Shown here: positions 1 to 41,366 of the stretch, in pieces
How positions within the stretch are numbered: the stretch's first letter is position 1
How the letters are laid out: the number at the start of each line of letters is the position of its first letter
DNA from: Bugula neritina
Lineage: Eukaryota > Animalia > Bryozoa
DNA length: 41,366 nucleotides
Assembly: GCA_964035545.1 (NCBI GenBank)
Contig: CAXIUT010000077.1
Coordinates: 1 to 41,366, forward strand
Direction of reading: 5' to 3'
The notes under the pieces: generated by a model
Databases searched by the model: none
What the model was told of the DNA's origin: nothing
The model's input: only the letters and a program-made list of their open reading frames with translations
Program-made: the position numbers and the translations under genes

Positions 1-80
1 CCCAACCCCAACCCCAACCCAACCCCAACCCCAACCCCAACCCCAACCCCAACCCCAACCCCAACCCCAACCCCAACCCC
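1..80. repeat. Left telomere, (CCCCAA)n
   Basis: Terminal C4A2 hexamer array at the contig start, the Tetrahymena-type telomeric repeat. Confidence 0.98.
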
Positions 81-1577: not shown

Positions 1578-2188
1578 ATGGGTGACGTCTTAAAAGAACT
1601 ACAACAAGAGTGGTCTCAAGGCATTGACATCTCTTCCTCTCAACAATCTTCATCTTCTCTTAGCATAATCTCTTCCTGTAATATTCACTTAATCAAATAC
1701 AGTCGATAATGTCTCTAGTAAGCTTCTACAGAACTCATAGAAAACATTGATCTACAATCGATCAATTCTCATTGGTAAATACAGCTTCATGATTTAATCA
1801 AAAAAATTTAAAATGAAGCCAATCTTTATCTTTAAGGTATATCTAATAGTATCAAGGTTGTTAAATTATGTTGTTTTTACCAGAGGAATAACTTTTTGTC
1901 AATTGTGGAGTTCATCCTCTGACCACTGATGTCGCAATCAACCTGCACTAGTTTTTTGACATCCAAACTATCACAGTTAAAGTTTAAAAAGTTTAGTGGA
2001 ATTTATCTCATATTGAAATGTTGAAAAACATTTCAGATAAGTATTTAGAAGGACCTCCTAAAATCATAAAATAACTACCTCCATAAAGTCTACAAAAAAA
2101 AATCATCGCTCAGAAACTTCCAAAAAGTAGGCTACATAGTTAAAAGAATATTGAACTGTCAAAAAAGAAGATTTAGACCTTAGAATGA
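1578..2188 (+). CDS. Hypothetical protein, ~196 aa; intron 1837-1856
   Basis: ATG to TGA is open under TAR=Glu after removing the 20-nt intron gtatatctaatagtatcaag. No family recognised. Confidence 0.6.
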
Positions 2189-2353
2189 TTTTATGTTAAA
2201 TAGACCTGAGAATGATTTTATGTTAAAGAAGGATAGAGTCCTTTCAAAGAAAAGTAGAGAAGACTACTACTACCAAGTTAAGCAAGGAAATAGATATGGA
2301 TACAATTTTAACTAAAACTGTCATCAAAACATGAGACATCTGAGACAGTTCGT

Positions 2354-2510
2354 TAAAATAAAAGCAAAATAAATAAAAAACAATAAAATAAAAGCAAAGT
2401 AAATAAAAAACAGTAAAATAAAAGCAAAATAAATAAAAAACAATAAAATAAAAGCAAAGTAAATAAAAAACAGTAAAATAAAAGCAAAGTAAATAAAAAA
2501 CAATTAAAAA
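2354..2510. repeat. A-rich 30-bp minisatellite, ~5 copies
   Basis: Unit aaaataaaagcaaa(a/g)taaataaaaaaca(a/g)t. Confidence 0.9.
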
Positions 2511-2740
2511 AGTAACATAAATAAATTGCTATATCCAATTTAAATCAACTTTAGTGATATTTAGTGATATTTATACTTTATCTATGAAATATAACACAAA
2601 TATCCTTAATTATTATCTTTGGTCTTTGCCTTCAAAACAGTCATACTCTAATCCAATGTTTTACAAATACATTTCTATTCAATAGTTTCATGCAGATTGA
2701 TTTTGATTAATAAAAAAGAAGTCATAAGATAATAACTACA

Positions 2741-3004
2741 ATGGAACTGCCAGACTTCTAGATACGTTCTGTGGTGGAAAGGATCTTTCAGAAAGTAGAC
2801 CTCAACCATGACAACTTCCTCGATGTCAACGAAGTCATTTCTCTTATGAATATGGGCCTAGAAATGCTCAGAAGATCGAGAATGGCCACCTTTGCAGATG
2901 CCAAACAGTTCATCGCATATGCAGATGCCAACAAAGATAACCTTCTCTCCAAACAATAAATGTTTGACCTCCTTAAAAAGATCATCAACAGGCACAATCA
3001 GTGA
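2741..3004 (+). CDS. Small two-EF-hand calcium-binding protein, 87 aa
   Basis: EF loops DLNHDNFLDVNE and DANKDNLLSKQ(TAA=E). Ends at TGA. Confidence 0.9.
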
Positions 3005-3021
3005 CACCTATTGATTATTTA

Positions 3022-4494
3022 TTCCTTCAAACCTAAACAACACTTAAACATCTTTCAAGCCTAAACACTATTTAAACATCCTTCAAGCCTAAACAACACT
3101 TAAACATCTTTCAAGCCTAAACAACATTTAAACATCCTTCAAGCCTAAACACTATTTAAACATCTTTCAAGCCTAAACAACATTTAAACATCCTTCAAAG
3201 CCTAAACAACATTTAAACATCCTTCAAAGCCTAAACAACATTTAAACATCCTTCAAGCCTAAACAACATTTAAACATCCTTCAAAGCCTAAACAACATTT
3301 AAACATCTTTCAAGCCTAAACAACATTTAAACATCCTTCAAGCCTAAACAACATTTAAACATCCTTCAAAGCCTAAACAACATTTAAACATCTTTCAAGC
3401 CTAAACAACATTTAAACATCCTTCAAGCCTAAACACTATTTAAACATCCTTCAAGCCTAAACAACATTTAAACATCTTTCAAGCCTAAACACTATTTAAA
3501 CATCTTTCAAGCCTAAACAACATTTAAACATCTTTCAAGCCTAAACAACACTTAAACATCTTTCAAGCCTAAACAACATTTAAACATCCTTCAAGCCTAA
3601 ACACTATTTAAACATCCTTCAAGCCTAAACAACATTTAAACATCCTTCAAAGCCTAAACAACATTTAAACATCTTTCAAGCCTAAACAACATTTAAACAT
3701 CCTTCAAAGCCTAAACAACATTTAAACATCTTTCAAGCCTAAACAACATTTAAACATCCTTCAAAGCCTAAACAACATTTAAACATCTTTCAAGCCTAAA
3801 CAACATTTAAACATCTTTCAAGCCTAAACACTATTTAAACATCTTTCAAGCCTAAACAACATTTAAACATCCTTCAAAGCCTAAACAACATTTAAACATC
3901 TTTCAAGCCTAAACACTATTTAAACATCTTTCAAGCCTAAACAACATTTAAACATCTTTCAAGCCTAAACAACACTTAAACATCTTTCAAGCCTAAACAA
4001 CATTTAAACATCCTTCAAGCCTAAACACTATTTAAACATCCTTCAAGCCTAAACAACATTTAAACATCCTTCAAAGCCTAAACAACATTTAAACATCTTT
4101 CAAGCCTAAACAACATTTAAACATCCTTCAAGCCTAAACAACATTTAAACATCCTTCAAAGCCTAAACAACATTTAAACATCTTTCAAGCCTAAACAACA
4201 TTTAAACATCCTTCAAAGCCTAAACAACATTTAAACATCCTTCAAAGCCTAAACAACATTTAAACATCCTTCAAGCCTAAACAACATTTAAACATCCTTC
4301 AAAGCCTAAACAACATTTAAACATCTTTCAAGCCTAAACACTATTTAAACATCTTTCAAGCCTAAACAACATTTAAACATCCTTCAAGCCTAAACAACAT
4401 TTAAACATCCTTCAAAGCCTAAACAACATTTAAACATCCTTCAAAGCCTAAACAACATTTAAACATCTTTCAAGCCTAAACACTATTTAAACAT
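3022..4494. repeat. 28/29-bp minisatellite, ~52 copies
   Basis: Unit aagcctaaacaacatttaaacatc(c/t)ttc(a) with recurring variants (acta, actt, an extra a). Confidence 0.97.
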
Positions 4495-4565: not shown

Positions 4566-5732
4566 TCATCCCTCCTCTTTTCTCAAAGTGGCTGTCAACA
4601 AAAAGTGGTCATATGGATGGCTACTGTTGGGTAATAACTCCAACTTGCTATCTTCACCTCCTATATTTGTTCTCTTTGACACCTAAATTTCCAAGTTTGA
4701 CAAAATATGGTCTTTAACTTCATTCACACATTGGTCTGCCTTATGCAACTGAGCCTGAATAAAACTCCTTTTTTTGATAGTTGTAACTTCTGATGGATCT
4801 TTTGGAACAATAAAAGTCTTACAGTTCAGTCTTGGACTCTAAATGAAGTGATTAGCATCCATTCCTATCACAAAAGTGAACTTTTACTTCTCATAGTAAT
4901 CTAGCATGTAGTTGATTACTTTTAAAAAGTACTCTTCTTGTTTGAGGTAGCCTTCTTTGGCAGATGTAAAATGAGAAGATACCAAAAGATATTTATTCTC
5001 AGTAATTGTGATTACTGTATCTTCGTTTATGTTGAGTAAACGTTCCCATTTCTTTGTCTAGTTCTCAACTATTCTTCCAAAGATCTAAGTCCGATAAAAA
5101 AGCACTGAATCATTGTTTTTGACTGCAGTATAACCCTCAAGGGCCTACCATTCAACTGAACCTGCTTCTTGCAAAAACATAGCATCAACTGTCTGATAGT
5201 ACTTTTCCACTCTTTTCTTTTTAACATTCAACTTGAACTGGGGACGGTTTCTAAATTATATCAGAAATTCTTTCAACTTTAAAGCTTCTCCATTTAATAG
5301 CTTTTCATTCAGTTCCTCGATAGTTTTAAGGTCATAGACTGTCATAACGATGACTCTATAAAACAAAAAATCCATATTTAAGACATCGTTTACTTCTTCA
5401 ATAGTACCTTCTTCTCCAGGAATTTTTCCTCCTTTTTTCGCTGATTCGTAGTAACTTCTCCACAACTACTAGAATTTTGCCTTTGATAACAAGTTGCCGT
5501 CTAAATTTTATATTAGTTAATTTCCGAAAAGAACAGTCAAGCGATTTATTTTAAACCTTTTATCAAGACGACCTCCAGCCCATTTCTTCAACTCAGGAAA
5601 GTCAATTTTTTGTAGAGTGAGATAGTTTGAATTGAGTTGTTAAAAAAGAGGAGAGCCATCGTTAAACTCAAAAGGATTGGTGTTGATGCCTGAGAAGTTG
5701 AGAGTGGCTACTTTTAGAGAAGGTCTTTCCAT
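4566..5732 (-). CDS. Endonuclease/exonuclease/phosphatase (EEP) family protein, 388 aa
   Basis: Motifs LKVATLN, DAMFLQEAG, LVSSHF, IGMDAN and C-terminal HPYDH appear in canonical EEP order. The length is a whole number of codons under TAR=Glu. Confidence 0.82.
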
Positions 5733-5823
5733 TGATAAAATCAAAAGGAATTGATAAAATTATTAAGTCCTATTGAATCAAATAATCTCAGGTATCCTAT
5801 ATATTAGTAAATCACTATTATTA

Positions 5824-7143
5824 TCATGATAAAAATTCTTCAAGAAACTGCAACATAGGAATTAATTTATCTTCTCCTCTTCCACACAACTAACCCATAA
5901 ATCTTCCATTTCTTTCCACCACTCGCACTTCGTAGTCTTGTTATCCCACTTCTAATTGGCTCTACCATAGCTGGGACCTGCCTACGATCTGGCACCCCCA
6001 TCCAGGCAATATTCCAATCAATCCCTTCAAACTCAAACGACTACATATCATTTCCTACAAGCAAGCCTTTGTTTTCACTCTACTCCTATTCATATGCTTC
6101 ATACTACACTACTAAACCAAATGTAGCCAGCAATAAGGAAGGGTTATTAACTTTTAGAACCGTTCCTCTTCCAGGATTAACCCTTCGATCTGTACCTGTG
6201 GTAGCCTTAGAGGTTCTGTTAGATCGATACTCCGAACTGAACTATAAAGGGTAAATATGGAATCGGATTCTAGTTTGATAAAATGTTCCTGTATATTTTG
6301 ACACTCTAAGTTTCCCTTATGCAGAGTAAGAGTTAGATTTTTGAGTTCTTTTGAAACACTTACTTGTACTTAAATCAATTTTTTTCTCAACACTCTGAAT
6401 CTGATATTAAGGACATCACTTTTTAATATTCTATGATATTTTTAAGGTTCCATTAGAGAGCGTTCAAGTCTTCTCCATACTATTTATCTCAAACCTTTCC
6501 GTTCTTTCTTTTTAGTTCTATCTCCAGATAGTTTTCTTCTTGAATGTTTTGATTTACCTTTAGATTAGGGAGTCATTAACCTAGATTCTGAACTTTCCTG
6601 CTACATTATAGAAGAAAGATTCAGTCGACTATTTCCTCTATCTTTAATCTTCTGAGACATATCTTTTCTATTTTTCTATTATTTAGAAAATTTTGATTTT
6701 GATTTTTTCCTTTCCTTTAATTTTTATTTACTTCTAAATGTGTTAACTTTCTCTTTCATAAGTTTTCCTTTACAAGGACAACTTAAATGATACCCTTCCT
6801 ACTTCAAACTCCTTGATTTGCTTGAACTTTTGGAATTTTTTCTGTATTTTTTAGAAGGATTATACACCAAACAATCAGTTGAACCATGAACAGCAGATCT
6901 AGAAAAGGAGTGAGAAGGAGGAGAAAAACTAAATCTGACTCCTGACTGTTCTGTTTTGATGGGAGGGCTAGCTGAGTGAGGTTTAAGGTATTAGTGATAA
7001 GAATTATAGGGATAGAGAGAATAATATCTTTGAGTGTTTTTAATTAGTTTAGAGAGAGACTTAGTTTTAGAATTTTGAATGGTTTGGAAGATGTTTTCCT
7101 TAAGAGTAGTTCTTTTATCTTCCTCCGATTAAGAGTTCTTCAT
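5824..7143 (-). CDS. Hypothetical Lys/Ser/Arg-rich protein, 439 aa
   Basis: ATG at 7143 to TGA at 5824 with no in-frame TGA. Largely low complexity. Confidence 0.65.
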
Positions 7144-18415: not shown

Positions 18416-18496
18416 CTTTTAGTAGATGATTGAATTTTAACACAAAAATATCAAATGAAGGAAATACTAGAGATAATGAAGAGTAAATATATGAAA

Positions 18497-21400
18497 TCAA
18501 GTATTTTCTTATATTTATACAGAATCGCATCCAAGCATTTAAGCAATGGTGGTTGGTTCTATTTAGTGAAGTAGTATATGAGTTTGACTATTTTAAAGAT
18601 ATTTGATGGTCGTAGTGGTAGCTTTTTGAGTGATAAATTAGTAACACTGAACCTACCTCACAGGATTGCCACCTACGTTAGTACTATTTTACTTAATTAT
18701 AGAGATCTATTTTATAATTTAATGAGTTGAATGAGGGTGACAGGTAGTAGTTGAATTAGATTATGAGCCAGGTTGAAGGAAGAAAGAGAATGTAGTTGAT
18801 AAAGCTATCTAGGAAATGATGGTATGAGGTTAAAACTTAGAGATAAAGTTTTAAGACGACATTTTTAGTTTAGAATAGGAATTTATTTTATTTTATTATG
18901 ATCGGCGTAGATTGTCTTTAACTTAGAATATTCAGATAAATTAAGATTTTAAATAGAATTGTTATTCACTATTAATTTAGACATTTTGGGCATATAGTTA
19001 TCGCCCAATTCATTCAATCTATTATCAGACACATCCAACTCCTACAATCCTTTTAGCTTATGGTCTTCAAATCTTATAAGTTTGTTTTTACTAACTACTA
19101 GTTTAGATAAATTGTTTAATATCAAAATAGGAAGGCCTCCCAACTTATTTATCTATAAATGCAGACGAGTTAAGTTCAGTAGTTTATTGACTGACTAATG
19201 CAAATATTATAGTTAATTACTATTTAGGTATAATTCTTACAAATTCTATAAACTTTCCACTGCTTCCATCGTCTTTAGTCTATTATTGCTCAATGATAAA
19301 TATCTTAACTTCCTCACTGGAAACTACAGCTTCAATGTACCTATGGTAGCAACAGTAGTAAAGCAAGGACTGTATTATAGACTATTATGGCTCAAGTCCA
19401 AATGCAAAAGATCCCATAATTTACTAATTAGGGGAAACTTACTCTTCAAACTATTATGTGACAGATTTAGTTATTTTAATCTGGTTAGTTAGTTAATCCT
19501 TTCAGGTATTTATTTTAATTTGTTAAATGAACAATTCAGTTTTGATAAAGCTAACAACTCCATCATCTACAAAGGAAATACCTACAACTGATTATGACTC
19601 AAATTCAATATTTTTAAACGACTAAGGTTCCTAATTGAACCATCAATACTCTCTAACTTGTTATTTTGCAATTCAAACACTTATAGTTGCTTTAAACAAC
19701 CGATAGATGAAGGAAGGCTCTTTATCTAGTTGTCACTCAAATTCAAATTGGCCAAACAAGGCAAATGGCATAACTGGTTCTCGATAGTTTTAATTCTGTT
19801 AGTCCTCAAACAAAGAGAACGCAACTCACTCAACTGCCCTATCTCTTTCGGCACCACAACTATCTTATTCTTGGCTGCTGATAGTTCTTTCAACTGAACC
19901 TGTCTCAACACCTCAATAGAAATAGTCTACACTCGATTAGAATCAATTATCAAGTTCTATAACTTACTCAAATGCTTAAGATAAGTAAAATCTTTGATAC
20001 TATTTTCACTCAAGTTGAGTGTTATAACATTAGGAAATAGTTTGAGAATCGACTCGACTGTCTACAAGTGGTTGTCAATCAACTAGATCTTTGATATGTT
20101 TTGTCTTTGAGAGCTATTGCCAAAGCTACATAACTAAGCCAACTGCTTGCTGTTTAGTCTTTCTTGATTTATACATATCTTATCTGCATTCTTCAAATAC
20201 ACATTTCTCAACTTCTATTGAGTCTGATATTCTTTCACCTGCTCTTAGTCTATCTTTATATGTCTCTTCCCGTATTCAGGATCTATCTTAAACACCAAAT
20301 AGTGATCTCTAAACTGCTGCTCTCCTTTCTCGTCTTTTATATCACAAATCTAGTATATCTTTTTACTTTTTATCCCCATTATCTTGGATGCAAAACAACT
20401 TTTGAACAGTTTAAATGGTTATATTCTGGTCTAATAACAGTGAATCAAAATACAAATACCATATTCAGGAACGTCTTAATCTTTTTTCAACTTCCTACAC
20501 TTGTCAACCACCTCCTTTTTAAAAGCAGCATTCAATATAGACAAACAGTCATCTCTACGAATTTAACATCTAGCGCACACCCAGTAATCACAACTCTTAC
20601 ACTTCAAATGGTTCTTTATAAACACATTGTCATAAAAATGCTACAAACAAAGACTGCAAAGAAATGGCTTAAAGTAAGGCTCCAACTACAAATGCTCAGG
20701 ATTATGACTTCTTAGAGGATTTTTCTAAACCTAAACCACCGAAGGCAACTGCATGTAAAGATTAAAACGATTGTCGAAACACTTCCAAATAGAACAAAGT
20801 TCAGTCAGAGGACCAAAATAAGCTCTCTTCAACTCGTAAAAATAATGGTTGTAGGCATTTGAAAACTAAATAAATCTACTATTCTTGCTCTTAACTGCCA
20901 ACTGGATCTAGCACAACAAGTTTCTATACCGAATATTGATCAGCACGTCGTTAGTACCCTTCTGTAGCCGATTGACCACTCGTACAAGTTGGATATTGCT
21001 TTCTCTACTCTGACTTAGTCTCATTATCTAGTTATAGATGCGAATGACTTCCTTTTCCCCAGAAATACACCTGCACCTGAACAAGTCCATAATTTGTAAA
21101 GAAATAACTGAAAAGTCCATCTGAAGAGTAGAATAGTTTTTTGAAAATTTAGCGATCGCTGTCAATAGTCCATGAATCAATCTATTTAAATACTTGATTG
21201 AGTAAGAATGCAAGTTATTAACGATATCTAGAGAATATTTAGCTGCTATGAGTTAATACTTTTCGATCGAGTTCGTTCCTTTAGCCCATAGTTCCCTTTG
21301 CATTAGAGCACTTTCTAACATATAGTTATTTTAGAATAGTTCCTACATCTCATGATCTATCTTCTACTTCTCTTCCCTTAACTATTTTTATAAATTTTAT

Positions 21401-22560
21401 CGCATATCTTTACTTCCCACATCTGAAAGTCCCTTATTCTTTAAACGAATTTCATCAACCCATAAGTCAAAAGATTGACTATCTCTAAACTTTTTCTACA
21501 ACTACTCGCACCACTTAGATATAAATCTTAAAACCTGCGAACTTTGAATACTTATATTATGAGCTGCTATCTCCTATTCAGTAAATAATCGAGTTGAGTC
21601 AGGTAACTTCTTACCGATCTTGTAGTCAGTGTACTCTTATACTTTTTATCGATATTTAGTCTTATTAGCAAGACTCTAAGGATGAAACTATTTTCCTTTG
21701 ATGTTTTCCTCTAGAGTTTCCTTTTTGAACACTCCCAAAGTTACACTCAGAGAATCTTCCCACTCTTAAAGATTGTCATTGCTTCTTTTATCTTTGTCTT
21801 CTTTCTCCTTTTCTTCCATATAGTCACTATCAGTAACAAGTTCAAACAATTAAGAGACTCTACTCTAGAACCTATCATAAATATGTGAGTTTCTGATTCT
21901 TTGATGTGTTTTTTTTAAGACTTAATTAAAAGCTCGCATGATCAAGTCGTTATATTATCCGGTTTATCGATAGTGCCACTGAACTTATGAGGCATAAAGA
22001 TAATTATTTTAAGGTTGGTGAGTAAAATCAACTTCTTTTATGATTCTATTAAGATTTCTATTGACTTATTGGCTTAAAGTCATCGGATATTTGTGCCACA
22101 TATAGTCTAATATATTATCCCTAATATGACTATTCATTATCTAAAACTATTATTTACCCAAATTGAATCTTTAACTCAGTCGAACGATGTTTCTCATTAT
22201 CTGCTATGAAGCAAAAACTTTAGAATTCTAAAAACTCAGTTAATTCTTTGAAAAACAGTTGAAAGATACTGACCATACCTTTTTGCACAGCCTAGTTATA
22301 AACATCTATAGCTACTCTCTTCTTAATCTTTATCCTTTTGGAGGCAAATCCATCAAAATAATTCGATCTCTCGGCTATAACAACTGACCAGAAACCAACC
22401 TTTCTAACTACTCCTCGCTTTGATAGTGCTGTCTGCTCATCTTTATGAACTCTGACATAAAAATTGATAACTGTTGCATCTAATGACCTGAAGAAAATTG
22501 AGAATCAACCGAAGGAGTCTCACAGTCTACTTTATCCAATTCAACCAATGGGTTCTTCAT
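18497..22560 (-). CDS. RelA/SpoT-like nucleotidyltransferase + Cys/His zinc finger + leucine-rich-repeat protein, ~1347 aa; intron 18673-18692
   Basis: One continuous frame under TAR=Glu. It contains IMDLFRCRCI..IQLVRVVNRLQKGTNDVLINIRYRNLLCEIQL..NHYFYELKR, then FLCSLC..HLKCKSCDYWVCARC, then about 20 LxxLxLxxNxL repeats ending in the LELSGNP cap. The CDS and LRRs are secure; the NTase assignment is from motif recognition only. Confidence 0.8.
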
Positions 22561-22655
22561 ATATCTGTTCAAATAAATATTTATATTATTATCATTCGAA
22601 TATAAGCTGATGAAATAGAAGATCAAATAGATACTTATGTTTGATATTTATTTAT

Positions 22656-22729
22656 GGGGTTGGGGTTGGGGTTGGGGTTGGGGTTGGGGTTGGGTTGGGG
22701 TTGGGGTTGGGGTTGGGGTTGGGGTTGGG
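22656..22729. repeat. Internal telomeric tract (GGGGTT)n, 74 bp
   Basis: Telomeric hexamers with one GGGTT variant, lying between two divergent genes. Confidence 0.95.
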
Positions 22730-27274: not shown

Positions 27275-27458
27275 ATTTTGATTTAATTACCTCCAAATGT
27301 AAACAAAATATTTCTTTAATCAAAACTATAAATACAGGTTCATTACCATAAAAACTGACACTAAACAGGTTCATTACCATAAAAACTGACACTAAACATT
27401 GAGCTTAAAGTTCTGTTAGATTCTTATTATCATTTAAGGTTATATGTGATCATTATCA

Positions 27459-28862
27459 TCATTTGCTGAAAACAAGTTCTCTTAAAGCAAGTAGCTCCTT
27501 CTGGTCTTTCAAGTACTCGTCCAAAGAAGCCTGTTTGGCATATATTTCTTTGTATTTAATAAAACTCTCTCTGATCTGCTCTTCTTCTCCCTTCCCAACT
27601 TTCTGCACAAAGTATTTCATTATCAACTAATCCTTTGCCTGAACATCATCAAGTGCCATTTTGTATCTGAAATGTAGATTTTCCATGGCTTTATTTATAC
27701 TTTTTAGTTCATTTTACTTGTTCTTCATTTAAAGCTATGACTTCTTGGCACTTGCCTTCAAATCAGCACATGCTTTCAAGTCTTTTATTTTAAGTTATTC
27801 CTTCAAAGCAGCTATCCTTTGAAGGTCTTCGAAAGATTGGTCCTTCACTCTAGATAACTCTTCTTCTGTGGATTATAACTTATTTTTCATAGTTTCATTC
27901 CTTTAAATGTGACTTTTAAGAGCATCTTCGAATGTATTCTCTTTCTTCTGCACTAATGATTCTCTCTGAACTCGTCCAAGGTTATCTCTTAGCTGATCAA
28001 CGATCATTTTATGCTCTTCCCTCTCACTATTTAAAGCCTTCATCCATTTGTTTTAGACTTATTTCTCTTTTTCTGATTATTATTTTCTCTTCACTTACAG
28101 CTATCTCTTTAAACTAAAATTTTCCTTTTTTAATTACTATATTTATTCTCTTAACTTCTAATTCTACTGATTTTTTGTCTCCAACTCTTTTGATACTGAC
28201 CATAATTTCTATCTAAGAGGTGATTCTTCTTTCTTTGGACTCTTTTGTTAAGGCATCATCCATCCTCCTCGAATGTCTTTCTTGCTTCCTTACATCTTTT
28301 CATTGGTATTCATATAGATAGGCCTTTTTTCTTCCTTTCTATTGTAATTAACAATAGGAGCAATCTTTTTATTTTAACTTTCTCTTTCTCTAGAAAAAGA
28401 ATAATTTGGTGTTTTAGTAATATTACTACATTCTAAACCTCTACTCGATGAAACAACATGCAATCCTACAGGTTCAACTCTACTTGTTTGTCTTCTAGCA
28501 CTAAGGTAGTGTTGTGAAATTGTCTATTTGTTTTATTCATGATTTAGTCGAGGGTTAAACATTCTTGACAACTATTTTTCGTGATGATTCAAGTGCTTGA
28601 ACTGTTCTTTTAACTTGTTAAGGTCATCCTTCAACTCATAGAAATAAGAGATGTTTCCAGCAGGATTAATATTTATTGTTTGATTTTAAGGAGGACGATG
28701 TGAAAGAGGTCTTGCTTGATTTTTAATCAATTGCCCAGTGCTTCTTTGCTGAGATGGATTTATTGAGATATAATATGGGTTAACTGGATAGAAACTTCTG
28801 TCGATATGACTTTGTTGTCCTCTAAAAACATGATTTTGAACTTGTCCTTAGTAGGAAGTCAT
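27459..28862 (-). CDS. Coiled-coil protein, 467 aa, copy 1
   Basis: MTSYEGQVQNH... low-complexity N-terminal half and Glu/Lys-rich coiled-coil C-terminal half, ending LRELVFSK then TGA TGA. Confidence 0.8.
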
Positions 28863-29164
28863 CTATTATAATGGGATACCAAGAATTAATGATTCATTAA
28901 TATCATACTATGAACTAAACAAAATAAGATATTTGAAAAAAGTCTTTCTTTTCTTTGTAGTTGTTCTCTCACTTTCTAAAGTCGCTACTATTTTGTCAAC
29001 TTTTGTAAACAAAATATTTCTTTAATCAAAACTATAAATACAGGTTCATTACCATAAAAACTGACACTAAACAGGTTCATTACCATAAAAACTGACACTA
29101 AACATTGAGCTTAAAGTTCTGTTAGATTCTTATTATCATTTAAGGTTATATGTGATCATTATCA

Positions 29165-30568
29165 TCATTTGCTGAAAACAAGTTCTCTTAAAGCAAGTAG
29201 CTCCTTCTGGTCTTTCAAGTACTCGTCCAAAGAAGCCTGTTTGGCATATATTTCTTTGTATTTAATAAAACTCTCTCTGATCTGCTCTTCTTCTCCCTTC
29301 CCAACTTTCTGCACAAAGTATTTCATTATCAACTAATCCTTTGCCTGAACATCATCAAGTGCCATTTTGTATCTGAAATGTAGATTTTCCATGGCTTTAT
29401 TTATACTTTTTAGTTCATTTTACTTGTTCTTCATTTAAAGCTATGACTTCTTGGCACTTGCCTTCAAATCAGCACATGCTTTCAAGTCTTTTATTTTAAG
29501 TTATTCCTTCAAAGCAGCTATCCTTTGAAGGTCTTCGAAAGATTGGTCCTTCACTCTAGATAACTCTTCTTCTGTGGATTATAACTTATTTTTCATAGTT
29601 TCATTCCTTTAAATGTGACTTTTAAGAGCATCTTCGAATGTATTCTCTTTCTTCTGCACTAATGATTCTCTCTGAACTCGTCCAAGGTTATCTCTTAGCT
29701 GATCAACGATCATTTTATGCTCTTCCCTCTCACTATTTAAAGCCTTCATCCATTTGTTTTAGACTTATTTCTCTTTTTCTGATTATTATTTTCTCTTCAC
29801 TTACAGCTATCTCTTTAAACTAAAATTTTCCTTTTTTAATTACTATATTTATTCTCTTAACTTCTAATTCTACTGATTTTTTGTCTCCAACTCTTTTGAT
29901 ACTGACCATAATTTCTATCTAAGAGGTGATTCTTCTTTCTTTGGACTCTTTTGTTAAGGCATCATCCATCCTCCTCGAATGTCTTTCTTGCTTCCTTACA
30001 TCTTTTCATTGGTATTCATATAGATAGGCCTTTTTTCTTCCTTTCTATTGTAATTAACAATAGGAGCAATCTTTTTATTTTAACTTTCTCTTTCTCTAGA
30101 AAAAGAATAATTTGGTGTTTTAGTAATATTACTACATTCTAAACCTCTACTCGATGAAACAACATGCAATCCTACAGGTTCAACTCTACTTGTTTGTCTT
30201 CTAGCACTAAGGTAGTGTTGTGAAATTGTCTATTTGTTTTATTCATGATTTAGTCGAGGGTTAAACATTCTTGACAACTATTTTTCGTGATGATTCAAGT
30301 GCTTGAACTGTTCTTTTAACTTGTTAAGGTCATCCTTCAACTCATAGAAATAAGAGATGTTTCCAGCAGGATTAATATTTATTGTTTGATTTTAAGGAGG
30401 ACGATGTGAAAGAGGTCTTGCTTGATTTTTAATCAATTGCCCAGTGCTTCTTTGCTGAGATGGATTTATTGAGATATAATATGGGTTAACTGGATAGAAA
30501 CTTCTGTCGATATGACTTTGTTGTCCTCTAAAAACATGATTTTGAACTTGTCCTTAGTAGGAAGTCAT
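29165..30568 (-). CDS. Coiled-coil protein, copy 2 (identical to copy 1)
   Basis: Same sequence offset by 1706 bp. Confidence 0.75.
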
Positions 30569-30658
30569 CTATTATAATGGGATACCAAGAATTAATGATT
30601 CATTAATATCATACTATGAACTAAACAAAATAAGATATTTGAAAAAAGTCTTTCTTTT

Positions 30659-30745
30659 GGGGTTGGGGTTGGGGTTGGGGTTGGGGTTGGGGTTGGGGTT
30701 GGGGTTGGGGTTGGGGTTGGGGTTGGGGTTGGGGTTGGGGTTGGG
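30659..30745. repeat. Internal telomeric tract (GGGGTT)n, 87 bp
   Basis: Replaces the 87 bp found at 28953-29039 and 32365-32451 in the sister repeat units. Confidence 0.96.
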
Positions 30746-30870
30746 ACAGGTTCATTACCATAAAAACTGACACTAAACAGGTTCATTACCATAAAAACTG
30801 ACACTAAACATTGAGCTTAAAGTTCTGTTAGATTCTTATTATCATTTAAGGTTATATGTGATCATTATCA

Positions 30871-32274
30871 TCATTTGCTGAAAACAAGTTCTCTTAAAGC
30901 AAGTAGCTCCTTCTGGTCTTTCAAGTACTCGTCCAAAGAAGCCTGTTTGGCATATATTTCTTTGTATTTAATAAAACTCTCTCTGATCTGCTCTTCTTCT
31001 CCCTTCCCAACTTTCTGCACAAAGTATTTCATTATCAACTAATCCTTTGCCTGAACATCATCAAGTGCCATTTTGTATCTGAAATGTAGATTTTCCATGG
31101 CTTTATTTATACTTTTTAGTTCATTTTACTTGTTCTTCATTTAAAGCTATGACTTCTTGGCACTTGCCTTCAAATCAGCACATGCTTTCAAGTCTTTTAT
31201 TTTAAGTTATTCCTTCAAAGCAGCTATCCTTTGAAGGTCTTCGAAAGATTGGTCCTTCACTCTAGATAACTCTTCTTCTGTGGATTATAACTTATTTTTC
31301 ATAGTTTCATTCCTTTAAATGTGACTTTTAAGAGCATCTTCGAATGTATTCTCTTTCTTCTGCACTAATGATTCTCTCTGAACTCGTCCAAGGTTATCTC
31401 TTAGCTGATCAACGATCATTTTATGCTCTTCCCTCTCACTATTTAAAGCCTTCATCCATTTGTTTTAGACTTATTTCTCTTTTTCTGATTATTATTTTCT
31501 CTTCACTTACAGCTATCTCTTTAAACTAAAATTTTCCTTTTTTAATTACTATATTTATTCTCTTAACTTCTAATTCTACTGATTTTTTGTCTCCAACTCT
31601 TTTGATACTGACCATAATTTCTATCTAAGAGGTGATTCTTCTTTCTTTGGACTCTTTTGTTAAGGCATCATCCATCCTCCTCGAATGTCTTTCTTGCTTC
31701 CTTACATCTTTTCATTGGTATTCATATAGATAGGCCTTTTTTCTTCCTTTCTATTGTAATTAACAATAGGAGCAATCTTTTTATTTTAACTTTCTCTTTC
31801 TCTAGAAAAAGAATAATTTGGTGTTTTAGTAATATTACTACATTCTAAACCTCTACTCGATGAAACAACATGCAATCCTACAGGTTCAACTCTACTTGTT
31901 TGTCTTCTAGCACTAAGGTAGTGTTGTGAAATTGTCTATTTGTTTTATTCATGATTTAGTCGAGGGTTAAACATTCTTGACAACTATTTTTCGTGATGAT
32001 TCAAGTGCTTGAACTGTTCTTTTAACTTGTTAAGGTCATCCTTCAACTCATAGAAATAAGAGATGTTTCCAGCAGGATTAATATTTATTGTTTGATTTTA
32101 AGGAGGACGATGTGAAAGAGGTCTTGCTTGATTTTTAATCAATTGCCCAGTGCTTCTTTGCTGAGATGGATTTATTGAGATATAATATGGGTTAACTGGA
32201 TAGAAACTTCTGTCGATATGACTTTGTTGTCCTCTAAAAACATGATTTTGAACTTGTCCTTAGTAGGAAGTCAT
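30871..32274 (-). CDS. Coiled-coil protein, copy 3 (identical to copy 1)
   Basis: Same sequence offset by 3412 bp. Confidence 0.75.
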
Positions 32275-32576
32275 CTATTATAATGGGATACCAAGAATTA
32301 ATGATTCATTAATATCATACTATGAACTAAACAAAATAAGATATTTGAAAAAAGTCTTTCTTTTCTTTGTAGTTGTTCTCTCACTTTCTAAAGTCGCTAC
32401 TATTTTGTCAACTTTTGTAAACAAAATATTTCTTTAATCAAAACTATAAATACAGGTTCATTACCATAAAAACTGACACTAAACAGGTTCATTACCATAA
32501 AAACTGACACTAAACATTGAGCTTAAAGTTCTGTTAGATTCTTATTATCATTTAAGGTTATATGTGATCATTATCA

Positions 32577-33974
32577 TCATTTGCTGAAAACAAGTTCTCT
32601 TAAAGCAAGTAGCTCCTTCTGGTCTTTCAAGTACTCGTCCAAAGAAGCCTGTTTGGCATATATTTCTTTGTATTTAATAAAACTCTCTCTGATCTGCTCT
32701 TCTTCTCCCTTCCCAACTTTCTGCACAAAGTATTTCATTATCAACTAATCCTTTGCCTGAACATCATCAAGTGCCATTTTGTATCTGAAATGTAGATTTT
32801 CCATGGCTTTATTTATACTTTTTAGTTCATTTTACTTGTTCTTCATTTAAAGCTATGACTTCTTGGCACTTGCCTTCAAATCAGCACATGCTTTCAAGTC
32901 TTTTATTTTAAGTTATTCCTTCAAAGCAGCTATCCTTTGAAGGTCTTCGAAAGATTGGTCCTTCACTCTAGATAACTCTTCTTCTGTGGATTATAACTTA
33001 TTTTTCATAGTTTCATTCCTTTAAATGTGACTTTTAAGAGCATCTTCGAATGTATTCTCTTTCTTCTGCACTAATGATTCTCTCTGAACTCGTCCAAGGT
33101 TATCTCTTAGCTGATCAACGATCATTTTATGCTCTTCCCTCTCACTATTTAAAGCCTTCATCCATTTGTTTTAGACTTATTTCTCTTTTTCTGATTATTA
33201 TTTTCTCTTCACTTACAGCTATCTCTTTAAACTAAAATTTTCCTTTTTTAATTACTATATTTATTCTCTTAACTTCTAATTCTACTGATTTTTTGTCTCC
33301 AGCTCTTTTGATACTGACCATAATTTCTATCTAAGAGGTGATTCTTCTTTCTTTGGACTCTGTTGTGAACTTGATGATGCTTTCTCATTGGTATTAATAT
33401 TATAATGTCTTTCTTTCTATTTTCTATTGGGATTAACTATTGGAACTACTTTTCTTTTCTCACTATCTCTAGAAAAAGAAAAATTCGGTGTTTTGAATTG
33501 AAGTTGATGAACACTATTATTTTAAAGACCCTTACTGGACGGAACAATATACATTCCTGCAGGTTCAACTCTACTTGTCTGTCTTCTATCTATTTATCTA
33601 TCAGCACTAAGATGGTGTCTTGAAATTATTTATTTATTTTATTCATTGCTAGGTTTATGGTTCGGTATTCTTGACAGTTATTCTCCTCTGTGATTGATCT
33701 GTTTGAGTTGTTCCTTCAACTTGCTGAGATCATCTTTCAACTCATAGATATTAGAGTTATTTCCTCCAGGATTGATGTTGATAGTTTGATTTTAAGGAGG
33801 ACGATGTGAAAGAGGTCTTGTTGGACTGTTAATCAGTTGTCCAGTACTTCTTTGCTGAGATGGATTTATCGAGGTATAATATGGATTGACTGGATAGGAA
33901 CTTCTTTCAATATGATTTTGTGGTCTATAGTCTCTAACTACTTGATTTGGAACTTGCGGTTGGTAAGAAATCAT
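32577..33974 (-). CDS. Coiled-coil protein, copy 4, paralog with diverged 5' half, 465 aa
   Basis: The 3' half is near-identical to copies 1-3. The 5' half (MISYQPQVPNQ...) is homologous but clearly diverged, with indels. Confidence 0.8.
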
Positions 33975-34032
33975 CAATTATAATACCACCAACAATTACT
34001 GATTTATAAATATTGCATATTAACAATAAAAA

Positions 34033-37000
34033 TCATTGTACAAAACCCATAGTTTTAAGTCTTTCACTACTTTGTAGCTGTTCTCCCACTATATAAACCA
34101 ATATTTACTTTGCCTACTTTCAGTAAAACAAACAAGTTACCCACTAGCATACAAAACAATCAGCTGATGGATAGTATTTCTTGTACCTTGACTATGTACC
34201 ACAGCAAATTGAATGATAGTTTGGGTTGATCTCTTTGGTATTCCTGCTAGTAAATTCCTCCATATTCTACTATAATTTTTATATTCATAAATCTATCTAA
34301 AACGAATTATCTCCAAAAAATTTATCACATAGATATTTCCCTTAGAAGTACAAGAAACCTAAATAATCCATCAAATACTATCAAGGGATGCTAGTGGTCC
34401 ATCAACTGAATGTCAGTTATAGTTTAGTCTTCACTTTTTATGTCCAATACTCGAACCTACATCTCCTGTTCTAGTAGTTTTTCTCCCAAATAACTAACTT
34501 AGAATTAAGTACTTGAATATAAATAAAGTTTGCTAGTGATCCAAAAATATAAAATAGCCCATTCTATGAATACACAACTTCAACTTCAGTGCAGAATCGC
34601 CTTAAAACTCAACACCCAAATTAAATACTCTACAAAATCGAAGCTAACTTAGCTAATGAACTAAAATCAAACCACTTCTGTCAACTGATACTATCAAATC
34701 GAGTAGAATTTAGGTTTTAATAAGAATAACTTCTGAATGATGACCGAAAAGACACTTAACAGATTCGACCTTATCTCCAACAACTTTTAATATCTCTATT
34801 TTAGAACCCACTCCAAAGAATAGATAATCTCCCAAAGACTACATACATTTAGATTCAATCAAATGCTCGACTTTCACTCTTTTCTTTTAGAATACCTTCA
34901 CAGATCCTTTAGAAAGTCCGACCCATTTGTTAATATTTATTGACAAGACCAAACAATCTCCTCTACTCTCGTACTCTCGAATCCACTAAAAGTTATTATA
35001 AAACCCGAGGATAGAAGCCTTCTTGAAAATAACTTGAAAATTGCTCCAGATAAAAATTCCAGCAGTATTATAGTGAAATCCTTTAGGAATATTGCCTTTG
35101 ATAGGAGAATAGATAACAATCATCTCGTCGATATCGATGTCTTTCCGAAGAAACCTGGGAACATGTCCTTTATAAAATAAACTTTAAGGAATTTGACCAA
35201 ATTAACTTATTGATATTTGAGCTCTCATCATCTAGACTTCACTAGAATAGCAGCTAAATATATCATGCTAGTAGCACTGTATATGATAGAGGTTGTCGTT
35301 TTACTCAGCTACCTAGTAAGGAGCCTTATTGCCAAATATCAAATCTATCCATAAATGCAATTTATCACTTACCTGAGGACTCTATAAGACCTACCTCATT
35401 TTAAATATAAATTATTCAGGGGAACGAGCCCAAGTCGGCAATACCACAGCGTGCACCTCTTATCCTTTCTGCTTACGACCCAGCTATATTTGATTTCTAT
35501 TTCTCAAAAACTAAGGCCAATAATAAAATTAGGGAGTAAGTTCTTTATTATCAGAAGATGAAGATAATATAGTAGAAAATTGTTCCTTTATTCCAGAAAA
35601 TAGACGATCAGCGTGATCTAACTTTCTTCCTTGATGCTACCAGTGTAGACTAGTAAAGGGTTATAATCTAATGAAGTAGTTATAAAGAATAGTAGGATTA
35701 GAATACATTGTCCCATATAAAAAACGAATATCTCGGTCACTGGGGTCAATTTCTTGCAGTCTCATCTTTAGTTTAGAAAACTTATCGATATTTAACTTAC
35801 CAGTAGGAACAGATAGATCTCTCAAGTTCTACTTCTTCATGAAATCCCGACCCAGCTCATGAAAGTTATCTTTGCCTTAATAATTCACTATCACCCAAGG
35901 CATAACTGGATATTGAGCCAAATCATTGGTTGACCTCCCTGAATACCGATTGACTAAACCTAGATACTCGAAATTACTAAGTTATCCTTTCCTCCACCTA
36001 TCTGTAAACATTCTTTGCTAGAACTCTTCCTTCCGATTGAGAATCAGATCCACTTCTTCTCCTTTGAATTTATCCAAAAAGCCGTTCCTGGTTTTTTCGT
36101 AAAACAAATTGAAAAAGTAACTTTTATGCGTTTTAGAACTAAACAACTAAAAAGCAACCTGTCTCAACATATACCTTCGAGTAAATATTTATCCCTATAT
36201 AAAAGATACTTCAAAAGTATTTATTTACGTCTATTACCACTAGTTCAACTTCTACCTCCAGTGACATTTGTTAGTAGTCATTCGGTATTCTTTCTCCTCA
36301 GGCATTGTTTCATGTCCAGTAAAAGTAAATTATATATTTTTGGCTCTTATGCTTATTCTACCTCCATAAACTCCCCGCTTAGTCACCCACTCACACCAAA
36401 ACCACTCCTTCTTCGACCTATCTTTTTCTATCTCGTCTTTACGACCTGCATAACTCCAAGATAAGTCAGATCGAGATATTTATGATACAGTAGAAAAGTA
36501 GGTAGAATTGATGGATGATTTTAGGGAAAGGTCAAGGTTATTTTTGTTTGTTTCCTGTTTAAGCAAGATAAGATCTTTATATTTTTGTCTGCGAGGGTAA
36601 GGCAACTTATTGAGTTCCATTTTTACTGGTTTAATATTAAGTTTATATAACCCAAAAGGTCCCAACTCCTTTTAATCCAATTAATAGAAACAAGTTGTCA
36701 AATCATCAAGATCTCCCTGTAGTTAAAACCAGTGCTAGTTAGATATCAGCAACTCTTTCCACTATTTCTAATTTTGAAGACCTTCATCATTTAATTAAAT
36801 CAACATAGCCTCATATATCTCATCCAGTTAACGATGCACTCCGATCATTTTCAATTCAGATGGGAACTACAACTACACCAACTTCTAATTCAAAGGTTAA
36901 ACCATCCAGCTTGGAGTAGTAATATTATTAATCCAATACTCTCTTGATACTTCTAGTAGTTTACAACTGACTAGTTATAATTTATCGAATGATTTATTTT

Positions 37001-40000
37001 TTTATTATTATAATTCTGATGTAAAGGTTTTAATGATTTATTTTTGTTATGTATCTTTGATACTAAAGCTTCTAACTGTCTTCATAGCCAAATCCATCAA
37101 TTTCAATAGCTATTGGTCAATGAAAGAACTCTACAAAGCCTATTAAATACACTTACTTGCATGAACCAATCCCTCTATTGCCTTCTTCTTAGACTTCTAT
37201 TTAAATATTTTCCATAGCTATCCACTAATAGAACCAGCTCGTATTATATAACTACGATTCAATGAATTAACCACCTACATAAACAGCTACACCCACAATC
37301 CCATCTATTAAGTAGTTTCAAAGCTATTTGTATTGCTTAGTAGGTAATCTATGGTTTGTTTGAAGATAGCGATGGGAGCCAAAGTGGATATAAATGATAT
37401 TTTGTTGCCCAGCTATCGATATAAAATTAAATTTAGTAATAAATAGAGTTATGTAAGTTAACATTTTTTTGATAAAAACAATGCTATTGAACCACCAGGA
37501 CAAGTATCATCTTCTATGCTAACAAAAGGCAAAGCTACATCACCAACTCCATTCAGCAATCCCTGCTCAACCAGATAGTACAAACTCTTCCAACCTCGAC
37601 AATGCTAGATCAAGGCATAACATCCACGATTGGGCTTTTTAATATTATTTTTAGAAATAACCAATTCCTCAGAAACCTAGCCTTGACTTTTAATAAATTC
37701 TTTCAGCAAAGACAAAGTTTAATAAGTAACTACTGAAGGAAGTACAGCTAGCGTATTGCTACTATCTTAGTAATATACATTTTAGAGGAGAAACTATATA
37801 AAGATGGAGTTATTTTTAGTTATTTTAGCACTATTTAGCAACAATCGAATCATTTGTTTAATTATTGATCTCCAGGTATTATAAATTGTAGAGTCGACCA
37901 CTAACTTATCTTTAATAGCTTTAAATAAAATCAAATAGTTGTAATTACAACTCAAACGATAAAGACTTTTATCTGTCAAATGCTTTATACCAGAATTTAT
38001 CTAAACAAAAACCTTTTCTCTCTATTTCACCATACCAACTTTCAATATCACATCTTAAACCATCTTGTCAATAATAGTAGATTTGCCAGGTGTTATTATA
38101 TTGTATTTATCAATCACGTGGTGCAATACCCTCAGACAATCACTCAAACTAGAACTCTAGTTCTGATAATAAGCTCTGGTAAAATAACCAAGCCAACAGT
38201 CCTGAGTCTGCTCCCTTACCACGTACTCCAAGACTACATCCCCCAAACCAACCACCGCCTCTCCTACTAAATGTCCCTCACTCTCAACGATGCCACACAA
38301 CACTCTTAGACTAATATTCCAACTGCTTATCGACTTAAATATTATGTCGATGCCCACAAAACATTTCAACAGGTAAGTGGACATCATACCAAAAGCAGAA
38401 TTTTATGACTAAGAAAGCTATCGAGAGCGGCTTCTTCTTTTTAGTGATTTGAGCAAAGACAAAATAAAATAAAGATCTCTCTCGAGAAAGGTCTAGTTAT
38501 TGTTGTTGTTCTCTATTTGAAAATCTTTTATTTATGATAGAGAAGAAAACTACTTTACGACTGAATTAAAAAATGTATAGTAAGTTTAAGCCAGTCTTTT
38601 TTGCAGTAGCTAGTAATGAGGCAAATATGTCTATGAAGTAGCAAAAAGAACCATAGAGGAAGTCAGCTTTTTATGTAGATCTTTTTTAATCAAAACTCTG
38701 ATTAGCTTATTTTATCTAATATATGATTCGATGAGTGCGAGAACAAATTGCTGCACAGGAAGAGAACAGTTAGACCAAATCTAAAAATTAGACAATGTTT
38801 TTAAAACTAATTGAAGTTATATTTTCCTCATTTTGTTTTATATTTGAGGATCTGATGGGACTTTATGTTTGCCTCTTCTAAAAGATACTACAAACTAAAA
38901 TATACTCAACAGTAGTCCTGAGTCCTGAGTCTAACGAATTAGCTGGTTTCTTTTCACCAATAAAAACAAAAAAGGATTCAAATATTTCATGTTCTTTATC
39001 ATATCGTCCAAAAAACAACCTCCCTCGTCTAAATAAACCATCAGTCTCAACATCTAAAAAAAATACTTAATCAACTACACAATCTTCCCCTCACTATCTT
39101 CAACTTCCTCTAAACTACGACTCAGTCTCTCCAAAACAAAAAATATAGTCTCCAACCCACCCAACTGCAAACAAATATCAAACATCTTAGGCTGCTTAGT
39201 CACAGGATTTATTACAATCTCAGTCTTAGCCTTAAAAAAAGACCATCTCTGCTCCATCAACTACAATATCGGAGGCTATTGATGATGATTCAACTTATAA
39301 CAACACTTATCGAATCCCAACGACTCAATCACCACTCTTGTCTTCTTCTCACTCTCACACCATTTCTTGTACAGCTAAATCAACTCCAACGAACAATTCA
39401 ATGCATAAAATGAACGAATGGTCCCAAAACAATGGCCCAACTCAAAACTCTTTATCTATCCTTTACGAACCAACTTTATCTAGTACTCAGAACCATCAAT
39501 ACTTACCTTCAAAAGGTTGTTGTCCTTCCCAGACAAAGTAGCCGTCACTAAAGATTGATAGTTATCTTATCCCAAATTTATATATTGTTTCTTTTATTAT
39601 ATGATGACCTTATTTCCTTGTTTGACAACTACAACTGCCATACGTTATCTCTGTTCCTTGATAGATTAAATGCTAAACTTTTGAGGAGATTGACTAAAAG
39701 TTACACTTACCTCATACAACACCTCTTTATCCAATTTTATTCTAAGAATCTTGTGCTAGAGTTAAGTTGGTTAATATAGCCCGCCAATAGCGTCGAACAC
39801 TATCACAAATAGTAGAGATTTTACTTATCTAATATTTTTCATGACTAATCCACAGTGATCGATGCCACATTTTATATTAACATTTTCATCACAAAACCTA
39901 CGACTTAGAGAAGCAAGCAAACCTATTATCCTGATTAGTTTTTATACTATTACAGGAAATGACACACCTCTACGAATCAAAGACTGCCAACTAACTACAT

Positions 40001-41132: not shown

Positions 41133-41183
41133 TATATATATAATAAACTCAATTATCTAATTCATATTTTATCACAAAAATCA

Positions 41184-41366
41184 GGGGTTGGGGTTGGGGT
41201 TGGGGTTGGGGTTGGGGTTGGGGTTGGGGTTGGGGTTGGGGTTGGGGTTGGGGTTGGGGTTGGGTTGGGTTTATCACAAAAATCAGGGGTTGGGGTTGGG
41301 GTTGGGGTTGGGGTTGGGGTTGGGGTTGGGGTTGGGGTTGGGGTTGGGGTTGGGGTTGGGGTTGGG
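41184..41366. repeat. Right telomere (GGGGTT)n, interrupted by a 16-bp subtelomeric copy
   Basis: Terminal array in which tttatcacaaaaatca recurs at 41270-41285. Confidence 0.97.

Follow-up and report, generated by a model that had tools for sequence, protein, structure and literature searches.

Can a eukaryotic protein place an enzyme of the RelA/SpoT type under the control of a sensor? The question is raised by a gene on the minus strand (18451..22560) of contig CAXIUT010000077.1 (C86), a stretch of 41,366 nucleotides (nt) from a Bugula neritina assembly (GCA_964035545.1) that we refer to as the window. A sequence-only reading of this DNA had proposed that the gene belongs to a ciliate and encodes, in one chain, a RelA/SpoT-like nucleotidyltransferase (NTase), a Cys/His finger, and an array of leucine-rich repeats (LRRs). 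Sensor-coupled RelA/SpoT-type enzymes are known as bacterial antiphage toxins (CapRel) and as the heads of fungal NOD-like receptors (NLRs; NOD, nucleotide-binding oligomerization domain), and in the literature we found no report of an activity or a role for such a sensor-coupled domain in a protist. The best explanation of the locus, which we hold with moderate confidence, is a single cytosolic-looking sensor-plus-enzyme protein whose core has a RelA/SpoT-like NTase fold. If this is true, a conserved multicopy ciliate family would make it possible to test directly for immunity that works through nucleotides or through an arrest of translation in a protist with a free-living or epibiotic habit; if the core is not an enzyme, it would still be a new conserved domain joined to LRRs, of modest interest.

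Gene Structure and Genetic Code

From the ATG at 22560, the minus-strand frame runs for 1,300 codons without a TGA and includes about 80 in-frame TAA or TAG (TAR) codons. Because TGA-free frames of 150–600 codons are frequent by chance in the AT-rich DNA of the window, the length of the frame is in itself weak proof of a gene. The proof lies in conservation: an independent metagenomic open reading frame (ORF) of 1,356 amino acids (aa; L027:5699-9766) aligns with residues 27–1294 of the predicted protein at 42% identity over 1,281 aa (bit score 979). The long TGA-free frame noticed in the sequence-only reading is conserved from end to end in this homolog, and the comparison indicates that the gene is real, single, and multidomain.

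The gene belongs to the ciliate fraction of a mixed sample. The window is one contig of a 216-Mb assembly in which several organisms occur together: on contigs of tens of megabases (e.g., C1, C2, and C8), which represent the host, HSP70 genes are split by introns and follow the standard code; on small contigs (C86, C87, C95, C66, C51, C231, C63, C291, and others), HSP70 is rich in in-frame TAA/TAG; and at least one bacterial contig (C311) is also present. In the ciliate HSP70 of C87, TAR codons occur where HSP70 proteins have a conserved Glu (in MKETAE, FEVK, GGEDFD, EVVL, and EID), and at the columns of the core–LRR family where one member has a TAR codon, the others hold Glu 97 times versus Gln 23 times. 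Judging from these two sets of positions, the organism reads TAA and TAG as Glu and uses TGA as its sole stop, which is the peritrich code and what the sequence-only reading had assumed. On the same grounds, we dropped the reading of TAR as Gln.

The alternative that the gene is an annotation artifact, be it a chance frame in an AT-rich, TGA-poor genome, a pseudogene, or separate genes mistaken for a single one, is highly improbable. The many spurious TGA-free frames in the window are what it would predict; moreover, the contig holds internal telomere tracts, the assembly joins minichromosomes elsewhere (see below), and no RNA run containing the gene was found, the four runs compared being contigs without joints. 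The end-to-end alignment with L027 effectively refutes it, and it is also at odds with the same order of domains in the homologs L015 and L013 and in paralogs, with the alignment of TAR codons to Glu in relatives, and with the presence of the locus, at 0.95–0.99 of the words sampled, in three runs that belong to two of the three studies in which it occurs. As a separate observation, DNA of the window occurs in public runs labeled as three different organisms, from three studies.

The 3′ end of the gene required a revision. The sequence-only reading had placed a 20-nt intron at 18653-18672, giving a protein of about 1,347 aa, and this is not borne out by the homologs. Past the in-frame TGA (18658-18660), frame 0 carries an LRR-cap-like motif, ENQPPLLKCLDAIL, which matches ENNPVETVECLNFIL in the homolog L027 and DNPLEDCTELHLI in the C66 paralog. 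Because this conserved peptide shares frame 0 with its homologs, we favor a candidate in-phase intron of 24 nt with GT..AG borders (18653..18676, minus strand), which removes the TGA and keeps the frame; it fits the homologs better than the frame-shifting 20-nt intron, which is probably wrong and was dropped. In the favored model, the gene starts at the ATG at 22560, contains this single in-phase intron, ends with the TGA at 18451-18453, and encodes 1,361 aa. A paralogous HSP70 gene of the ciliate shows a gap of about 20–23 nt accompanied by a change of frame, in which no clean GT..AG was recognized; such a gap would be compatible with the use of tiny introns by the ciliate.

Homologs in Public Databases

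The search for relatives was seeded with a 74-aa stop-free piece of the core, because the search tools cannot translate past a stop codon. This piece matched 31 short proteins in a library of 1.8 billion proteins, and a profile made from them extended the family to 134 sequences. Each of them is a fragment found in a metagenome or an assembly, without a name or a precomputed Pfam domain. The family thus comprises at least 134 public fragments, unannotated so far because standard-code gene callers cut such genes at every TAA/TAG; that standard-code calling hides the gene had been anticipated in the sequence-only reading, and it means that a whole protein family has been missed by metagenome gene callers that do not read the peritrich code. 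Several members (P0034, P0032, P0056, P0063, and others) encode the core without any TAR codon, and TAR-free members such as P0034 and P0056 stood in for the window protein in searches that do not tolerate stops.

Domain Architecture

The predicted protein consists, in this order, of an N-terminal helical domain, a helical hairpin, an alpha/beta core, a Cys6 finger, a middle domain, and 20 LRRs. The parts follow one another in the same way in L015 (1,252 aa) and L013, so that the fusion of core, finger, and repeats in one protein, which was the central claim of the sequence-only reading, is conserved across species and paralogs. Conservation relative to L027 is highest in the core (64% identity) and lowest in the LRRs (36%).

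The N-terminal domain (21571..22482, minus strand as are all parts of the protein; aa 27–330) looks mostly helical and is 47% identical to that of L027. The paralogs on C51 and C231 have this domain as well, as do L015 and L013, and it corresponds to no known family, Pfam and Atlas searches having returned no usable match. It is followed by a helical hairpin (21253..21570; aa 331–436; 38% identity to L027) with a motif of the LRILTKWCEEL type, at the equivalent place of which the AlphaFold2 (AF2) model of the homolog P0034 has two long helices. The core itself, resembling the alpha/beta domain of RelA/SpoT homologs (RSH), occupies 20761..21252 (aa 437–600).

Downstream of the core lies a Cys-rich, zinc-finger-like module (20548..20691; aa 624–671) with the pattern H-x10-C-x2-C-x14-C-x2-C-x4-C-x2-C-x6-C, located where the sequence-only reading had seen a Cys/His finger and 47% identical to its counterpart in L027. 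The pattern C-x2-C...C-x2-C-x4-C-x2-C recurs in L015, L013, P0056, P0063, and the paralogs. Its spacing resembles that of C1 fingers; relatives do not conserve its first His or its last Cys. The sole Pfam match of the finger is a subthreshold FYVE hit in P0063 (E-value 0.01; 16.3 bits vs. a cut-off of 27.8), and the region is modeled in P0056 at a predicted local distance difference test score (pLDDT) of 50–70. The middle domain (20098..20547; aa 672–821; 43% identity to L027) is characterized by IP(K/E)YG(I/V)C and Y-L/I-V/I-F-K/E motifs and is found in L013 and L015; Pfam and Atlas searches with it gave nothing usable.

The C-terminal part contains 20 LRRs of 21–23 residues each (18715..20097; aa 822–1282), followed by the cap-like C-terminus. 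The register of 20 tandem repeats was established with a regular expression and agrees with the array of about 20 repeats initially proposed. It is supported by Pfam matches to LRR_8 (6.2e-9; 35.9 bits, cut-off 27) and LRR_4 (1.2e-8) at positions 19729-19926 of the window, and a piece of the L015 homolog matches LRR_4 at 9e-21. No Walker A pattern occurs in the 1,300 residues, no NTPase Pfam family matched the window pieces or the homologs tested, and neither a signal peptide nor a transmembrane segment is found in the C86 protein. Because it lacks these segments and a P-loop, the protein looks cytosolic and unlike an NLR. An NLR or STAND (signal transduction ATPases with numerous domains) interpretation was dropped, as no P-loop of the NACHT or NB-ARC kind lies between the core and the repeats.

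Conserved Residues of the Core

The motifs that had drawn attention to the core are all present where they had been reported: D492-L-F-R495, N530-R531, G-T536-N-D538, C-E551-I-Q553-L, and H572..Y575-E576..R579, preceded upstream of the Asp strand by a conserved helix, Y457-L-N-R-L-I-H463-G-L. The codon of E551 is a TAG (20908-20910), as had been noted, and every other member that covers this position uses an ordinary GAR Glu codon. In alignments of up to 132 sequences, approximately 17 polar residues are near invariant within about 150 aa (N459, H463, D492, R495, S500, N530, R531, T536, D538, N542, E551, Q553, H572, Y575, E576, and R579, with a constant Lys/Arg at 497). Column counts are 122/124 for Asp492, 33/33 for Glu551, and 32/32 for Gln553. 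Both these columns and the register of the structural model thus place a catalytic-type Asp on the first strand of the core and an E-x-Q on the neighboring strand. So many invariant polar residues gathered in the protein's most conserved domain form the pattern of an active site.

Predicted Fold of the Core and Its Possible Relation to RelA/SpoT Proteins

The AF2 model of P0034, built from a 51-row alignment (pLDDT 82.5, predicted template modeling score 0.75), shows a strand, a helix, three strands, and a helix at the conserved motifs, and the core is modeled at pLDDT >90 in both P0034 and P0056. RSH proteins occupy ranks 1–4 among the structural matches of both models; for P0056 these are CapRel, small alarmone synthetase (SAS) 2, Rel, and RelA, and RelA, RelQ, SpoT, and RelP also appear further down the P0034 list. 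Sequence identities of the RSH matches are 13–20% in the first model and 2–20% in the second, as compared with 3–17% for glyoxalases. The strand–helix–three-strand core superimposes on SAS and Rel structures with a root mean square deviation of 1.8–2.9 Å over 60–67 residues. Residues 189–257 of the P0034 model fall on Rel 263–331, which places D190 on D264 and E250 on E324, the proximity of Asp and Glu being deduced from the superposition ranges. We take D264 and E324 to be the catalytic residues of Rel.

Foldseek gave no match at E ≤ 0.001, and its weak matches (E 0.05–0.5) are mostly SAS1, SAS2, FaRel2, Tas1, and Rel. In a language-model search with residues 125–305, PF04607, the RelA/SpoT family, was the sole Pfam family at a score ≥0.9 (0.93; 190 shared features, 21 of 100 matches), and no glyoxalase family appeared. 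A low-confidence ESM model in the Atlas matched three PF04607 clusters at template modeling (TM) scores of 0.45–0.54. The combination of AlphaFold and Foldseek that the sequence-only reading had proposed as a check gave a divided answer, with RSH proteins at the top structural ranks and Foldseek E-values of only 0.05–0.5.

A number of observations weigh against a RelA/SpoT-type core, and most of them are at the sequence level. A six-frame, stop-reading scan of the whole assembly with PF04607 (gathering score, 27 bits) found only a bacterial gene on C311, outside the window. With hmmscan at E ≤ 10, no Pfam family matched the core in pieces of the window, although stop-free pieces are too short for Pfam, phmmer against the PDB, or Atlas searches, all of which were blank; nor did any of 14 uninterrupted homolog sequences match PF04607 at this threshold. 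A family profile searched against PDB sequences with hmmsearch returned only coiled-coil noise. Alignment of profiles with hhalign, run where HHpred had been suggested, was not significant against either of two RSH alignments seeded from the C311 gene, one of 28 SAS sequences and one of 50 long RSH and diverse SAS proteins (scores 16–21, P 0.02–0.11, probability ≤2.3%), and a reversed control scored about as high as the real alignment (17, P 0.09). At the level of motifs, the position of the G-loop Tyr is occupied by Thr in 49 of 50 sequences (G-T-N/K/R-D), the Asp–Arg spacing is DxxR versus DxxGxR in RSH proteins, and no RxKxxxSxxxK ATP-phosphate motif precedes the Asp strand, its place being taken by the Y-L-N-R-L-I-H-G-L helix. 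Finally, the superposition is limited to a core of about 62–69 residues that leaves out the flanking helices, and a shape search of the Atlas with both AF2 models was weak (TM < 0.35, with an RSH cluster at rank 2 at TM < 0.3).

The RelA/SpoT assignment of the sequence-only reading thus fails at the sequence level and is partly upheld at the level of the fold, where the language model also leads to PF04607. A RelA/SpoT-like fold is plausible but unproven, RSH synthetases being the best, though weak, structural match of the predicted models. In our view, the core is likely to be a divergent domain of the RSH or NTase-fold type.

Alternatively, the core might be neither an RSH relative nor an enzyme, but a lineage-specific alpha/beta interaction or regulatory module with a widespread strand–helix–three-strand arrangement, carried by an LRR scaffold like that of SHOC2-type adaptors and using its Asp and Glu residues structurally or to bind a metal or ligand. 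The missing sequence-level link to any NTase is in line with this alternative, and so is the C63 paralog, which has lost E-x-Q and T-x-D while its frame is still open. We nevertheless regard it as rather unlikely, given that RSH proteins hold ranks 1–4 for both of the independent models and have higher sequence identities than the other matches, that the structure-independent language-model search led to PF04607 and to no glyoxalase family, and that some 17 invariant polar residues per 150 aa are concentrated in the most conserved domain.

The Putative Reaction Product

A more specific alternative is a bona fide RelA/SpoT synthetase that would make the classical alarmone (p)ppGpp (guanosine tetra- or pentaphosphate) upon binding of a ligand to the LRRs. 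The order of its motifs (D..R, K-N-R..G-x-x-D, E-I-Q, and H..Y..R) parallels that of RSH proteins, the best local hhalign register, though not significant, is also that of the RSH motifs (Asp on Asp, K-N-R-L..G-T on K-D-Y-I..G-Y, and C-E-I-Q on v-E-I-Q), and the register of the structural model sets Asp and Glu on the Rel residues mentioned above. This alternative is nonetheless improbable, as no family member searched matches the PF04607 model, a near-invariant Thr stands in for the acceptor-stacking Tyr, and the ATP-phosphate motif is not present. A hydrolase partner for (p)ppGpp was likewise not found, although no search was aimed at one. The replacement of the usual GY by GTND had already been pointed out in the sequence-only reading, and the corresponding residue of CapRel, Y155, was highlighted as an active-site G-loop residue (PMC9712102). 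Because of the missing Tyr and ATP-phosphate motif, (p)ppGpp appears doubtful as the product, which is probably another compound. An adenine-nucleotide product or the pyrophosphorylation of RNA ends is at least as likely; adenine nucleotides (FaRel, Tas1) and the 3′ end of RNA (CapRel, FaRel2) are known alternative acceptors (PMC9712102).

Comparison with Known Sensor-Coupled Systems

In the explanation that we prefer, the core would be an active Mg2+-dependent nucleotide-transferring enzyme, with Asp492 (first strand) and Glu551/Gln553 (neighboring strand) in the roles that D264 and E324 have in Rel. If CapRel is taken as a guide, the closed state of the core would be maintained by the finger and the repeat array that follow it, and opening would occur when a ligand binds the fast-evolving repeats; CapRel and the fungal RelA_SpoT NLRs share this logic. 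Extending this scheme more tentatively, peritrichs could possess NOD-less immune or prey receptors in which an LRR or tetratricopeptide repeat (TPR) array directly controls a diverged RelA/SpoT enzyme, and a nonguanosine messenger or tRNA pyrophosphorylation would arrest the cell, a possible eukaryotic counterpart of CapRel and toxSAS proteins.

CapRel (CapRel-SJ46, PDB 7ztb), a fused toxSAS toxin–antitoxin, is among the closest known systems, with an RSH-type synthetase-fold domain followed in one chain by a finger-type module and a variable sensing part. Autoinhibition of CapRel results from docking of the pseudo-zinc-finger on the ATP site and is relieved when a phage capsid protein binds directly (PMC9712102). 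The likeness is limited to the order of domains, core then finger. CapRel has about 370 aa, whereas the ciliate protein is eukaryotic, has about 1,360 aa, and differs by real Cys ligands in the finger, by a 300-aa N-terminal domain, a middle domain, and 20 LRRs, and by the absence of the G-loop Tyr; sequence homology between the two is undetectable.

Fungal NLRs offer the second parallel, since some carry an N-terminal RelA_SpoT effector domain (Dyrka et al. 2014, PMC4986451) and thus join a eukaryotic domain of the alarmone-synthetase type to C-terminal repeats thought to sense non-self. In both cases, the type of repeat varies among paralogs, LRR or TPR-like in the ciliate and WD40, ANK, or TPR in the fungal NLRs. 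The fungal proteins, however, match PF04607 and have a NACHT or NB-ARC domain between effector and repeats, whereas the ciliate protein has neither and shows a zinc finger in the place of the NOD module.

With SAS1 and SAS2 proteins (RelQ and RelP; 5dec, 5ded, 6fgk, and 6ewz) and with Rel and RelA, the resemblance lies in the superimposable core, with Asp and Glu-x-Gln on the catalytic positions. The ciliate core differs from these synthetases by GT in place of GY, by DxxR in place of DxxGxR, and by lacking the N-terminal phosphate-binding motif. Its repeats are those of cytosolic "typical" LRR proteins (LRR_8/LRR_4), with 23-residue LxxLxLxxNxL units; unlike in such proteins, they are C-terminal to a putative enzymatic head, and no kinase, Roc/COR, or NB-ARC domain accompanies them.

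Paralogs in the Ciliate

A search for paralogs with variable LRRs had been suggested in the sequence-only reading, and a core-profile search of this assembly identified six copies in the ciliate, with repeat arrays of the LRR or the TPR-like kind. The copy in the window (C86) has a finger and 20 LRRs, and the copies C66:60353, C51, and C231 also have a finger followed by LRRs. The C63 copy (L026:2626-3198) has a degenerate core in which Asp..Arg is kept and E-x-Q and T-x-D are lost; it retains an open frame, LRRs and a Cys pattern like that of a finger can be read further downstream in other frames, and the copy may be a pseudoenzyme or a pseudogene.

The sixth copy, C66:77034 (L129:3965-5299 and 5254-6843; C66 ~76465-79340), shows a core followed by TPR-like repeats, with no finger and no LRRs. 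Its core keeps D..R, N-R, T-x-D, E-x-Q, and H..Y-E..R; the repeats were called TPR-like by reading the sequence, as stop-free pieces are shorter than 45 aa. Such an exchange of LRRs for TPR-like repeats would fit a modular sensor–effector family.

The nearest cluster of the family in the Atlas has 160 members of about 173 aa, without Pfam domains and mostly labeled Nucleocytoviricota (feature score 0.96, TM 0.59/0.61). These sequences may be fragments of the family mislabeled as viral, or giant-virus homologs of the core.

Telomere Tracts and Other Features

A pattern search detected C4A2 repeats at the left end of the window (23-76) and G4T2 repeats at its right end (41188-41361). Two internal tracts of the G4T2 telomere type were also found. 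The first (22660-22724, plus strand) lies about 100 nt upstream of the ATG and outside the protein, and the second is at 30657-30740; both share the orientation of the right-end telomere and are located about 100 nt upstream of a minus-strand gene start. Public contigs match the window up to position 22646, where repeat masking begins, and the first tract lies beyond this point. The internal tracts are possibly alternative sites of chromosome fragmentation or the traces of joined minichromosomes. In the interior of C66 (L129:2353-2817), a G4T2 tract is followed by a run of N and then by a C4A2 tract, an arrangement suggesting that scaffolding joined two molecules that each bore a telomere.

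In the segment 16844-20227 of C311 (L001), the bacterial PF04607 gene, annotated as belonging to the GTP pyrophosphokinase family, overlaps by 4 nt an upstream ORF of 380 aa that resembles a nucleoid-associated protein; the two ORFs lie on the minus strand at 1048-2031 and 2028-3170 of this segment. The closest genome match of the PF04607 gene is a metagenome-assembled genome labeled Candidatus Poriferihabitaceae.

Elsewhere in the window, a 1,706-bp unit is repeated four times in tandem over ~27298-34100, the copies being 100% identical and each containing a TGA-free frame of 528 codons. At one junction between units, part of the sequence gives way to the second internal telomere tract, and the copy concerned is 90% identical. 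This array is either a real gene array or an artifact of long-read assembly. A TGA-free frame of 2,246 codons (34434-41171, minus strand) that contains 141 TAA/TAG codons starts just inside the right-end telomere.

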